Below are positions 47,182-53,641 of a stretch of 64,000 bases of DNA, piece by piece. A program made the position numbers and the translations under genes. The DNA is from Trichosphaerium sp. ATCC 40318. Lineage: Eukaryota > Protista > Tubulinea. The first letter of the stretch is position 1, and every line of letters begins with the position of its first letter. The notes below the pieces were generated by a model that searched no databases, was not told where the DNA came from, and was given only the letters and a program-made list of their open reading frames with translations. The stretch is taken from positions 1 through 64,000 of the forward strand of contig JALMLS010000042.1 of NCBI GenBank assembly GCA_038496445.1, given 5' to 3'.

Positions 47182-50100
47182 ATGACAGACGACGCAACAC
47201 CTCTTCTTTCGTTTGTACAAGATAAACCACGTACTCTAAAGAACGCCAAAATAGTTGAGAGGGTCGTTAAGCAGACATGTAATTCAAAAGACAGCCCAGA
47301 ACTCAAAGTCATCAAGAGTGTCTCAATAACAGCTTGGTATGGTTTTTTCCATTGTCACGTTTTTGAAACCAAAATGTTGACTACTTTTCTAGGTTGGGAT
47401 CAGATTCGAGATTACTTGCTTGTTGTATTTTTTTTAGTTTAACATACTCTCTTCTTTGTCTTGCTATGCCTTCATTATTGACAAATATCATTGACCTAAT
47501 TTTAAAAGACCCAACATCTCCAAAGCTGAAGGTACGCACGTGGCAGAGTTCTCTTTTTTTTTGAAATTAAAATATCTTTATTTACGCTTCTTGCCACTTA
47601 CTCGAACTTCATTTTATACTTTTTAAGTGAAGCTACTTGTGATTGCGGTATATTTATTAATACTGATTTTAGTGGATCATTGGGTATTGGTTTGGTGTTA
47701 TAATGCTAAGAAGGTTAAACAGAATGTTATGCGATAGCATAAAAATGTACTTGGCAACTCAAGTTGAAGATTCCTGGCGTTATTGTGGATTACAGCGTTT
47801 TTACAAACTCCCAATTGATTGGCATGATAACACCAATGCAGGTACTAAGAGCCTCCGTTGTTAAATCAAAGAAAAAACACAGAACGCTCCCAAACTTAAA
47901 TGCTTTTTAGGTGAAATAGGTGCTAAAATGGAGAAAGGCGCAGCAAATATCTGGGTGCTAATACACGAAATGTTTGGACAATATTTATTATTAGAACTAT
48001 TACCTTTCCTTATGGCATTATCCTCAGCGATTATGATAGCTCCTTGGTGGCTTTTTGTACCAACAATAGGCATCAACTTTTTTTTTGGATACTTTTGGTA
48101 TGGTGCCCGAAAGAAGCTTCATACTCTGCAACACCATTACTACAAAGGAGCAAATCAAACACTATATGATGGTGTATCTAATATTCGATCTGTTAAATCA
48201 TTCGGAAGAGGTACAAAACAGCATCAAAACAAGCAATTTTTATCTTGATTTTTTCTTACTTTTTTAATCTCAGGTACTGCTGAAGTTTTTCGCTATGTTC
48301 AACGGTGGCATGGTTATCATTTAACAGAATACAAAGAAGACTCTTTAATGTACAATAGAAACGGATACCAAAAACTTGTAGAGGCAGCAACTAAAGCTGT
48401 CGTAATTCTTTACGGTGTATCACAGATAAACAATGGAAACATGACTGTTGGTACTTTGTTGCTATTGATAAGATACCAAGACATGACTCTTAACCCTTTA
48501 AGTACGTACTAATAGAGGAACCCCTTTTGATTCAGCGCTTTTAACAAGCACTTTTGTAATATTTTAAGTCATTTATTTGTCTGCACGTGTTTGCAATAGC
48601 TTCGTAGTTTTGAGAACATTCAAGCTCACTTTTCTGATTATTTTTAAACCAACCTTTGTTTTAGATAAGTTCGCTGGTGGTTACAGTCGAATGATAAGAA
48701 GTATTAATAAGATAACACATTTATACGATATTATTGCTACAGAAGACACTCTCAAGGATGCCAAAAACGCAAAAGATCTTCCAGAGTTAAACGAAGAAGT
48801 AGAACTTAGAGATGTTTCTTTCACTTACAATAAAATGAAAGGCTCAACACCAGCGATTCAACGTGTACGTATACTCACGCATATAAAGGTAAATAATAAA
48901 TTTAATATATTTATAGATTTCATTTACTATCAAAGCGGGAACAACAACAGCTCTTGTTGGTACGTACTTTTTGTAACACTTTCTGCAACCGAAAAACATA
49001 AAACACAAAATCCCGAAAAAACAAGACGCACTTTTTTCCATAAAAGGCAAAATCTGAAAAGCATGATGGAAGTGCTTTTTCTCGCCACATCACCTATAAA
49101 TATTCCACATAATCTTCCTTCGTGGAGGACCAGGGTGCTATAGCCCACGCCCGGCGACTGACTCAATTTGTTGATGGTGGTGAAAAAGCACTTCCATTTT
49201 ACTCCCAGATTTTCCCCATACTTGACCAACCAATCAACTTCACGTGTCTTCTTTAGCATGAAACACCCTTTTAGAGGATTATGTACTAACAATAACTATT
49301 TAGGTCATTCTGGTTCTGGAAAGACTACTCTAGCTAATCTCTTGCTCCGATTTTATGATCCTCAAGAAGGATCTATACTATGGGACGGAATTAATCTAAA
49401 AGGAGCCAAAAGGAATTCTCTGAGACGAAAGGTTGCTATTGTGATGCAAGATAGTAGTCTATTTGATAGATCTATCGCGGACAACATCGCATACGGCAAA
49501 CCAGAAGCAACAATGGAAGAAATCATTACAGCTGCAAAACGGTATTAATTTCTTTACAGTTCTTGGTTTCTCAGTTACTAAACTCCTTTCATCTCAGTGC
49601 TAATGCTCATGATTTTATTATAAAAGCGCCTAAGGGATACCAATCGTTAATTGGAGAACGTGGCATCAAGTTGTCAGGTACAGATAGTTTTTGTTGTTTT
49701 TGTGGTTTTGATACTCTTTTCTTCTTCACTCATTGTCTTGATAAGGTGGACAAAGACAGCGTGTTGCTATCGCTAGAGCGTTAGTTCTGAAACCTTCCTT
49801 ACTAATACTTGATGAAAGCACAAGTTCTCTTGATAGTATCTCTGAAAAGGCTATTCAAGACTCAATACAACAACTCCATCATAATGTAACACAAGTAATA
49901 ATTGCACACCGGTACATCTCACGTGTTTCTAGTAAGATGACATATCACCTGATCCTAAAAATCTTATAGGCTTTCAACAGTGCTCCATGCAGATCAAATA
50001 GTTGTTCTAGAGGAGGGACAAGTAATAGGAAAAGGAACACATAAAGTAAGTCGCTCAAAGATATTAAAAAAAAAATTGAACCAAATACTAAAATTATTAC

Positions 50101-50187
50101 TAGGAGTTACTCAGAACAACACCTGCCTATTCGAATCTTGTAGAAACGCAATTTGCTGTAAGAGATGAAGAAGCTGTAAATAAATAA
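47182..50187 (+). CDS. ABC half-transporter, ABCB type (TMD-NBD)
   Basis: Walker [11 protein letters not shown]-loop IVMQD, signature [15 protein letters not shown], Walker [19 protein letters not shown]. Confidence 0.92.
49066..49197. other. Intronic long hairpin (candidate ncRNA or MITE)
   Basis: ATGGAAGTGCTTTTTC (49066-49081) pairs perfectly with GAAAAAGCACTTCCAT (49182-49197) and extends imperfectly inward, inside the 344-nt intron 48960-49303. Confidence 0.7.
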
Positions 50188-50381
50188 ACAATCATCCTTA
50201 TCCTTGAAGGACAGTGACATCCAACAGGTTTCAAAAGAAATCTAAAACAACAAAAATACTCATCTGCAGGAATAACAGTTAAAAGTGATAAAAAGTGGTG
50301 ATCGCATCACGTTGTTATCAGTAATGCCTTATTATTGCTTTGATTTCAAAGCGCTAACAGGTATGTAACGAAGAATTTAAA

Positions 50382-50464
50382 CGAGTGAGAGTCGGGAATC
50401 TTACCACTAGACCACCGGGGATTTTTTATAATTCTCCCCAGGCAGGAATCGAACCTACGTCTCC
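50382..50464 (-). tRNA. Circularly permuted tRNA-Glu(CUC): 3' part (nt 42-73) at 50464-50434, 12-nt spacer, 5' part (nt 1-41) at 50421-50382
   Basis: Rejoined: TCCCCGG TG GTCT AGTGGTA AGAT T CCCGA CT-CTC-AC TCG|GG AGAC GTAGG TTCGATT CCTGC CTGGGGA G. All four stems pair, and U8, A14, G15-C48, D-loop GG, U33 and TTCGA are intact. Confidence 0.88.
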
Positions 50465-51019
50465 AACAAATTTTTTAGTTGTGATAACATGTTGACTATT
50501 TACTGCACCACATGATAGTTGATAGCGTAGACAAGAAATCACACAAAAAGTGTCTATCTCAATAAGTTTTTCGTTACAGTAATTGATACTAGATAGTAAA
50601 TTACGAAAAAATTAAGAAAATCAAAGAATCGTGCAATGAAATTGCTTGAAGAAAACTGGTGGCACAACAAGTAATTCTTGTTTATTGATAATTGCTACCC
50701 CTCTACATTATTGTCGTGGCCAAATCACTGCAAAACCTCCAGTTGGCTCGCTAACAGAAGCTCCTGACTTCAATTCAATGCGACTTTTGCTACACTTATC
50801 GCCAAATCCAGATGAAACTCGAACCAGCTCGTTGTATAGCTTGTCTTTGTGTTGTACTACACGTGTTAATTCTCTTTGCTTACTTTTTAAGGAGCTTTCA
50901 GTTGTAGTTATCTTATTTTTAGAGCAGGTATGTGAATTAACAACGAGCGCAATTAATTTCTCATGAGTAGCAGCTGTACGTTTCGATTCATGCCTTGCCA
51001 ACTGATTTTTTAAATAATA

Positions 51020-52000
51020 AAGTGTCTTAAGTGATCAAAGTCGATGACTTAATTTGTGGTTAATAAAGGTACATACTATGTTTATCAAGTCCTACCATAG
51101 AAGCAACACAGGCTGATACCCCAGATCAATATAGCCTATCAGGATAAACGACCAGAAACTCCAAATCAACAATTCACTTTAAAGCAGTTCATCCACTTCG
51201 GGATTATCTACAATTCCTTTCCTCCAGAATATGTTGTAATTCATTTGCTTCTAGGTGATTGTACTATTTTCATTGGCTGCCAGGGCTGCTAGACTTATAT
51301 GCGCTGACATGAAGACAGCAATAAGAACCACGAAAACGATACGAAAAATGGATTAAAGCCAACTGTTACAATATGCATTGGAGGCTGTGGAGGTTGTAAA
51401 ATCTTAAACATAAGGCTATTAAAACACGCCTAAATTCACATTAACATCAATGCGTATATATTGGACTATGTCAAATCTCACAGCCATATAAGAACAAACT
51501 TTCAAATGGATTTCGACAAGTTGCAAAATGAAAACAAAAACAACTGTTTCTACCAGGCTATAATATTCTTTGTGTGTACCACATGTGCTCTTTTGAACAT
51601 TCAGTTTTAATCGCAAAACCCTAGCTTGGTTTTGGTGCTGTTTTATTGTATGACACAACGATGCGCTACCAATGATTCTTCTTTGTTTTTTTTCCATTGT
51701 CGTACTTTTTGACTTTTTGACAAACAGTCTTAGGGATAACATTATTAAACACTACTAAAGCTACATCAGTTTCTACTCCACAAAATTGCTAGTGAGAAGT
51801 AGGTGATAGAGTTGTTGGCTCTATGAGAATAAAATGAGAACACTACTTTTCCAAGAAATGCAACAAAGAGCAACATCTTCTGGGCTTTGATATTTATGAG
51901 TAGTAGTGTGAGCTATTAGCTACAGTATAATCCAAACTATGCAAATGGCACGTTTCTTTGTCACCAAAGATACAGCCTGTTGTTAAAATAATATTATTAT
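51020..52000 (-). pseudogene. Possible decayed membrane-protein gene
   Basis: One frame gives hydrophobic protein-like text (IFRIVFVVLIAVFMSAH..IFWRKGIVDNPEVDELL..LLIWSFWSFILIG) broken by several TAA/TAG codons. Boundaries are approximate. Confidence 0.25.
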
Positions 52001-52416
52001 GTGTAAGCTTTGTTGTTTTTTTTATCTTAATAGCCGCTATGATAGGCTTTTCGCATTACTACGCACCCAACTAACATAGGCTACAATACATTTTGGGACT
52101 CTTCATGGCGATTTCTAACGTTTTGCTAAAGTCAACGTGCACAATTTCGCGAAACGAATTGAGTTCAGAGAATGCCGTTAACGCCCTCAACGATTAACCG
52201 CGGAAGCAACAATTATAGAACGTGCAAATATCTTTGTGCATTGCTAGAATGTCAAAATGACTACGTCTGTAGGTTAAACTTTAGATGTAGCTTTCTTTGC
52301 TACCATTTGCCCAAACTTTTGTAAAAACATTCGCCTTCACTATCTAACACCGGCTGCACAAATACAACATTGTTACAGGAATGCTTAATTTAGTATTTTT
52401 TTCATATTTTCAGAAT

Positions 52417-53641
52417 CTACATTTTTTTCACGCACACCTCCTTTATACGTTCTGCCAGTATTATAGAAACACGATCATAGAATTCAGTAGTTGCATGAAT
52501 ACCATCTACAGTATTTTCATACTGCGATAACTTATAAAAATCGAAAAAGATGTCTACCATTTTCTGGAAATTTTTCGTAATAATATCGTTGTATTGTTTT
52601 GTCTCTTTCAATGTAATATATCTTTCCTTTAACTCATTTCCACTCTTTGATGATTCTGTATGAATAATTGTTGATACTACAATACAAGATGACCTATTAT
52701 TATTAATAAGAATCTTCTATTAATAGAAAGCGAAGCAAAAACGCAGTTTTTTGGTCAGTGCAACAGAAAATAGCTTACTCGCAGTTTCTAGTTTTTATAA
52801 CATTGGATAACCTCTCTACATCATGCCCGTATTTGAGACTATGATGAACATGAAGCATATCCCTATATAGACATGAGAAAATGTGAAACAGAAGCGAAAA
52901 TAAAGACAAATGTTATTAAAATTTTAAAGTCTAAAAATAAGGTACCAAAGGCCTCCTGGCATTACAAAAATAACTTGAGGTGTATCATCACAATTTGAAT
53001 GCCTTTAAAACTTAAGTTAAACTCATGGCCTCGTGTTGCAGGGAAGGGTTTTTTTTTATGTCTTTACCAAACTGACGCTGCCGATATGTTCTCTACTTAA
53101 CGCGTTAATAAAATGTTAAGCGTAAAAACAACCTTTCAAGTCCATCACGTGGTTTAAAAAAATCCAAAAATACATACGCGCTAAGAGCTTGTATTAGCAA
53201 CATACCTGCAAAGGGAAGCCATAAAAAACGAATATCTTTATCTTCTACAGTGTATTGATTGTCTTCGTGGTGTCCCATGTCGTAGATACGCTTTCCTAAG
53301 TTCAAATTACACAAAATTAAGAAACAAGGCAAAGCGCCACCGCTCACCAGTGAGGTCCTCGATAATCGCTCTAAATATATTCCGCGCCTATTCACGCAAC
53401 GTTAAGAGTAAAAGATAGCAACGTAGAGTAATTGAGTTAATTTATTCCGCCCTTCACGTGCCTGAGAGTCACCTATAAATGCGATAGATTTAAACCCTTC
53501 AAGTGTTTCTTTCAAATAAGAACGGTGTTTTGATACTAATACACGGACTGTACTGCCACTAGGGATTGAAATAAAGATTAAAAACGCCAAGAGAGATAAC
53601 CCCACTATCAAATATAAAATGCGACGGTGTTCAGGTGTCAT
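52417..53641 (-). CDS. PC-esterase/SGNH-like (GDS...DxxH) O-acetyltransferase or esterase, type II membrane protein
   Basis: N-terminal TM helix, IAFIGDSQARE, C-terminal VDGIH. Confidence 0.7.

Follow-up and report, generated by a model that had tools for sequence, protein, structure and literature searches.

A complete tRNA-Glu(CUC) is encoded in permuted order on the minus strand of the window, by which we mean the whole stretch of 64,000 nucleotides analysed here. The unit spans 83 bp and consists of the 3' part of the tRNA, a 12-nt linker and the 5' part, all on the same strand. A preliminary description of this DNA had proposed the same order (nt 42-73, a 12-nt spacer, nt 1-41), and it can be seen directly in the sequence. 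On balance, we favour the interpretation that this is a working, circularly permuted nuclear tRNA-Glu(CUC) gene, whose product would be matured by a BHB-independent route. The parts of the unit are the following.

50434..50464, minus strand: 3' part of tRNA-Glu(CUC), nt 42-73, GGAGACGTAGGTTCGATTCCTGCCTGGGGAG, read from the sequence
50422..50433, minus strand: linker (intervening sequence), 12 nt, A/U-rich, AATTATAAAAAA
50382..50421, minus strand: 5' part of tRNA-Glu(CUC), nt 1-41, TCCCCGGTGGTCTAGTGGTAAGATTCCCGACTCTCACTCG, read from the sequence
50387..50389, minus strand: anticodon CTC, nt 34-36
50445..50455, minus strand: B box / T-loop consensus GGTTCGATTCC, the sole such motif in the window
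50404..50414, minus strand: A-box consensus TGGTCTAGTGG, nt 8-19

Read along the minus strand from 50464 to 50434, the 3' part is segmented as GGAGAC-GTAGG-TTCGATT-CCTGC-CTGGGGA-G and comprises the last two bases of the anticodon stem (GG), the variable loop AGAC, the T arm, the 3' acceptor strand and the discriminator G. The 5' part (50421-50382, minus) is segmented as TCCCCGG-TG-GTCT-AGTGGTA-AGAT-T-CCCGA-CTCTCAC-TCG and provides the 5' acceptor strand, the D arm, the 5' anticodon-stem strand and the whole anticodon loop CUCUCAC, together with UCG, the first three bases of the 3' anticodon-stem strand. This part has 40 nt and yet extends to standard position 41, since it lacks position 17. 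The 12-nt linker joins the discriminator G73 to U1, so that it forms the loop that caps the acceptor stem in the precursor RNA. CCA is absent from the DNA of the unit, where G73 is followed by AAT, and the B box lies upstream of the A box, in inverted order.

When the halves are joined with the 5' part first, the resulting 71-nt sequence is called as tRNA-Glu(ctc) by ARAGORN, and its unconstrained MFE fold is the cloverleaf (-26.1 kcal/mol). In the native order, ARAGORN and Rfam make no call at the gathering threshold, and Rfam reports nothing at the locus at E values up to 10. ARAGORN is permissive on artificial joins: at each locus tested, between 352 and 887 of them were called a tRNA, given a genuine acceptor stem and T arm, and at the tRNA-Glu(CUC) locus 819 different joins were accepted. 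This makes ARAGORN invalid as a test, and it was therefore replaced by a strict parser, which demands an acceptor stem of 7/7 bp, a D stem of at least 3 bp, anticodon and T stems of 5/5 bp each, U33, R37 and a variable loop of 4-5 nt. ARAGORN calls on hand-joined permuted candidates warrant a re-check with such a parser.

Over all combinations of end points, the strict parser gives one solution only, with the junction after standard position 41. This junction, 41/42, sits within the anticodon stem, where the preliminary description had placed it, and the joined product reads ...CUCACUCG up to the junction and GGAGAC... beyond it. Every stem of the joined tRNA is paired, the two parts abut without gap or overlap, and the invariant and semi-invariant bases are all there (U8, A14, R15, G18G19, A21, U33, R37, Y48, G53, T54T55C56, A58 and C61). 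The sequences following the D arm and preceding the T arm were also exchanged for random pieces of the same window (n = 2000). Even with the acceptor, D and T arms supplied and any anticodon allowed, no more than 2.2 % of these 2000 randomised flanks produce a strict join, which makes a join by chance unlikely. The T-arm motif GGTTCRANNCC has a single occurrence on both strands of the 64 kb, which is the one in the unit, and neither half matches anywhere else in the window when up to 3 mismatches are allowed, the chance expectation being 0 matches. Aligned with ordinary tRNA-Glu genes from metagenome loci, the join is free of gaps across the junction and identical at up to 54/71 positions (76 %) among the matches listed; the motif GGAG(A/G)C, which is common to the ordinary genes and the join, spans the junction. 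The GC content of the halves is 59 %, versus 30-33 % in the flanks.

The RNA data consist of two runs, which are assemblies of spliced mRNA contigs; their coverage corresponds to neighbouring genes, with none in 50061-52424. The genes defined in this way are the following.

48154-50028, plus strand: ABC-transporter gene, defined by mRNA contigs, with a 15-residue stretch (letters not shown) and PF00005-type relatives
52526-53389, minus strand: neighbour gene, defined by mRNA contigs

The ABC-transporter gene is normally spliced and ends about 350 bp from the unit. According to the mRNA contigs, the introns of the neighbouring genes are of the GT..AG type, 52-163 nt long and spliced out, which bears out the earlier impression of an intron-rich protist. 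Since the mRNA contigs define the flanking genes only, the unit lies between genes of an intron-rich eukaryote. The neighbouring gene makes use of GAG codons. We also looked for the same locus in other assemblies by means of the neighbouring ABC exon; the best match is 64 % identical, and all matches are generic ABC domains. Two further observations concern the genome rather than the unit. At position 53048, in the minus-strand neighbour gene, the window and run X1 have T9 and the RNA contig of run X2 has T10; the whole contig is open in neither version, and this is likely UTR together with a trivial polymorphism or a sequencing error. An F-box/LRR protein of this genome has best relatives that are 41-49 % identical, one of which is an MMETSP transcript.

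Two candidate transcription signals were found around the unit.

50496..50502, minus strand: TATA-like TAAATAG, a candidate upstream promoter element by analogy with PMC3978253, 38 nt upstream of the 3' part
50290..50294, minus strand: T5, a candidate Pol III terminator, the first T-run of at least four downstream, 88-92 nt past nt 41

Directly 3' of nt 41 there is TTT alone. T-runs of four or more are absent from the unit and from the linker, so there is no Pol III stop in the linker. The linker holds a perfect TATAAAA (50424-50430, minus), 3-9 nt ahead of the 5' part, which is probably merely a consequence of an A/U-rich linker and could matter if the parts were transcribed separately. Two small hairpins are found at 50298-50310 and 50335-50352 on the minus strand, GTGATgcgATCAC and GCTTTG-aaat-CAAAGC within GCGCTTTGAAATCAAAGC. 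Both lie in the 90-nt stretch that extends from the 5' part to T5, and they would be parts of the trailer if Pol III reads that far.

Permuted tRNA genes reportedly occur in Cyanidioschyzon merolae, prasinophytes, the Bigelowiella nucleomorph and Thermofilum pendens (Soma 2007; Maruyama 2010; Chan 2011; reviewed in PMC3978253). Table 1 of PMC3978253 holds 34 such genes, from red and green algae, a chlorarachniophyte nucleomorph and Thermofilum. The published junctions are 15/16, 20/21, 37/38, 50/51 and 59/60, with linkers of 1-74 bp; in the published maturation pathway leader and trailer form a BHB, splicing endonuclease and ligase produce a circle, and RNase P and tRNase Z remove the linker (PMC3978253). 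These genes have been argued to rely on an upstream TATA-like element (PMC3978253).

The unit described here shares its layout with the published genes and differs from them in junction position and BHB. Like them, it has its 3' part upstream of its 5' part on one strand, with a 12-bp linker that falls in the range of 1-74, and it joins to a normal cloverleaf with consensus bases and without an encoded CCA. It also has a TATA-like element less than 50 bp upstream, a linker without a terminator, and A and B boxes in inverted order. Its junction, in contrast, lies at 41/42 in the anticodon stem, a position which the preliminary description did not recognise and which is indeed absent from Table 1 of PMC3978253. 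Its T-stretch is 88 nt downstream, whereas theirs is adjacent, and its host is a non-photosynthetic-looking intron-rich protist rather than an alga or archaeon. A search of the literature gave no paper that describes such genes in an amoeba or in another non-algal eukaryote. The split tRNA genes of Nanoarchaeum equitans and Caldivirga resemble the unit in that two encoded pieces need to be joined at the RNA level. They are found at separate loci and in separate transcripts and form a BHB from complementary flanks, whereas the unit is one 83-bp piece with swapped order and no BHB.

A scan of metagenomes with a generic pattern returned at least 120 loci, composed of ordinary adjacent tRNAs and classic 37/38 permuted tRNAs; among the matches listed, none is related to the tRNA-Glu(CUC) unit. 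Loci L002, L008, L075, L082 and L112 (tRNA-Pro CGG/AGG/TGG), as well as L089 and L091 (tRNA-Gly GCC), all on metagenome contigs, are classic permuted genes whose anticodon-loop junctions agree with 37/38. The published table (PMC3978253) contains no permuted Pro or Gly(GCC), and these environmental genes may be unreported members, their source probably being marine picoalgae. Two other loci, L071 and L087, carry near-identical permuted-looking units with an unusual ATC anticodon and a 76-nt product. In both units the strict join is located at positions 27-32, on the 5' side of the anticodon stem, and neither locus yields an ordinary tRNA call. At L092, a permuted-looking unit with complementary acceptor strands and a 5-nt linker is flanked by two ordinary tRNA-Glu genes, one UUC and one CUC; the strict parser finds no cloverleaf for it.

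Four of the environmental genes served as positive controls in a test for BHB geometry. They have the permuted layout in common with the unit, and their linkers are 12-16 bp long. In the strict geometry, L089 and L091 (Gly-GCC) reach 11/12 helix pairs, while L002 and L112 (Pro) reach 10/12, and these scores coincide exactly with the anticodon-loop junction that the strict parser gives for each of the four. The same test at the 41/42 junction of the unit finds 6 of the 12 possible pairs, and variants with bulges of 2-4 nt or mirrored geometry at 41/42 do not rise above background. Scores of 10-11/12 in the controls mean that the test detects real BHBs, and there is none at the junction of tRNA-Glu(CUC): the controls have an anticodon-loop junction placed in a BHB, and the unit has neither. 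This agrees with the preliminary description, in which a clean BHB could not be built and which took this as a hint that the endonuclease might recognise its substrate in a relaxed or different way. An open scan of the locus yielded an off-target BHB that would leave a 12-nt insert at 41/42; it was rejected, as an open scan reaches 10/12 by chance.

Other processing signals were sought in the flanks and in the fold of the unit. When the RNA is folded in native order, the stable elements are the T arm and the linker-closed acceptor stem only, and the folds contain no stable terminal helix between leader and trailer. The pairing AAUUU/AAAUU suggested earlier for leader and trailer does exist, over 5 bp, but it is a weak pairing that the MFE folds do not include. 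No ribozyme or other known RNA family was found in the flanks (Rfam, E up to 10). With neither a BHB nor a known ribozyme or RNA family in the flanks, no known maturation route applies, and the absence of a BHB excludes, as the joining step, the classic splicing-endonuclease reaction by which algal and archaeal permuted tRNAs are processed.

From the arrangement of the unit, we infer how it might be transcribed and processed, and by which enzymes. A single transcript would contain the leader, nt 42-73, the 12-nt linker, nt 1-41 and the trailer. Given the inverted order of the B and A boxes, the upstream TATA-like element is the probable driver of this transcript. The tRNA body would fold with the linker closing the acceptor stem, and leader and trailer would exit at the break in the 3' strand of the anticodon stem. 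Both would then be removed and G41 joined to G42. At that point the two ends would lie side by side on the continuous 27-31 strand (C27-A31), in the manner of a nick in a helix, which could be sealed by an RNA ligase. Sealing would give a circular intermediate, and precursor and circle would retain the linker AAUUAUAAAAAA; RNase P and tRNase Z would subsequently excise the linker, and CCA would be added.

The sealing of a splinted nick by a duplex-specific ligase is, we assume, within the general abilities of Rnl2-family enzymes. Members of this family have roles in repair and in editing ligation (PMC3400036). We put forward, as a tentative proposal, a second, BHB-independent mode of assembly, in which the precursor would be opened in the 3' strand of the anticodon stem, trimmed to the helix and its nick sealed by a duplex-specific RNA ligase, or in which the nick would never be sealed and RNase P and tRNase Z would leave a two-piece, base-paired tRNA.

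Several observations support the reading of the unit as a permuted gene: the exact abutment of the halves, their gap-free homology to tRNA-Glu, the null of 2.2 %, the GC island, the intergenic site and the use of GAG by the neighbour. Further support comes from the linker length, the absence of CCA, the TATA-like element and the terminator-free linker, as in C. merolae. Against a working gene we count the absence of a BHB, the fact that a T-run of at least four is found only 88 nt downstream, and the lack of a stable leader-trailer helix.

The same observations bear on the possibility that the permuted DNA is real and a dead by-product, either the recent remnant of a rearrangement, such as a tandem tRNA-Glu dimer whose outer halves have gone, or a copy of a processing intermediate, which would be untranscribed or never joined. 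We consider this unlikely. It would be compatible with mRNA contigs that leave 50061-52424 uncovered, with a locus that has no BHB or other known processing signal and no nearby Pol III terminator, and with the consideration that a young relic would look intact still. For a dimer to have decayed in this way, two independent truncations must meet at one nucleotide, without gap or overlap, and must leave the outer halves traceless and the inner halves flawless. Decayed outer halves were sought in the flanks, and neither comparison is significant (trailer against the 3' half, TTCGttaCaTaCCTG, p = 0.12; leader against the 5' half, p = 0.49). Flawless inner halves next to traceless outer halves are compatible with selection acting on the inner halves or with an event in the very recent past, and not with uniform decay. 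If a circularised mature tRNA had been copied, the expected linker would be CCA or nothing, and not 12 A/U-rich nt. That the unit yields a stable non-coding RNA of tRNA shape whose parts stay unjoined, such as a YrlA-type mimic with a protein-binding or regulatory role, seems to us improbable. In such a molecule the acceptor stem would be permanently closed by the 12-nt loop and the ends would lie in the anticodon-stem region, and the native-order fold, with its T arm and loop-closed acceptor stem, would suit it, as would the absence of a joining signal. The YrlA-type Y RNAs of bacteria and phages are indeed similar to the unit in their loop-closed acceptor stem, their D and T arms and the position of their ends on the anticodon-stem side. 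They have no decoding anticodon loop, however, and carry a long Ro-binding stem in place of the anticodon arm, whereas the unit has no long terminal stem between leader and trailer and keeps a perfect anticodon arm. The full anticodon stem-loop (U33, CUC, R37) and the exact two bases that complete the stem would be needless for a mimic, and there is no Rfam match.

The two remaining explanations concern the origin of the DNA itself. The unit could represent the DNA between two site-specific insertions of mobile elements in adjacent tRNA-Glu genes, or a SINE, with the missing halves displaced; we think this very improbable, and within the window it is largely refuted. Neither half has a second copy at up to 3 mismatches in the 13.5 kb upstream or the 50 kb downstream, no direct or inverted repeats bracket the unit, no part of its 660-bp neighbourhood is repeated in the window, and the nearby ABC-transporter gene is a normally spliced host gene. 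We give least credence of all to chance resemblance or an assembly artefact. The permissiveness of ARAGORN on joined sequences would speak for chance; against it stand the unique strict solution with its low null, and the 76 % identity of the join with real tRNA-Glu genes. At 83 bp, the unit fits within a single sequencing read, and the collapse of a tandem array would not give a permuted unit in unique flanking DNA. Ciliate-style germline scrambling was considered separately and rejected, there being no pointer repeat at the two ends of the unit.

The permuted tRNA genes known so far come from a handful of algae and one archaeon, and have been explained via the BHB and the splicing endonuclease. 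Should the unit described here give rise to a working tRNA, its two parts must be joined by a pathway not yet described, which would be either an undescribed recognition mode of the eukaryotic splicing endonuclease or a different cut-and-seal machinery that makes tRNAs. Since ARAGORN and Rfam/Infernal call nothing in the window, the tRNA set of genomes with such genes would look incomplete. The unit is a concrete candidate substrate for eukaryotic nick-sealing RNA ligases. If the sealed-nick or the two-piece reading is true, its tRNA would be produced by a maturation pathway undescribed in any organism, and permuted tRNA genes would be extended to a non-algal eukaryote.
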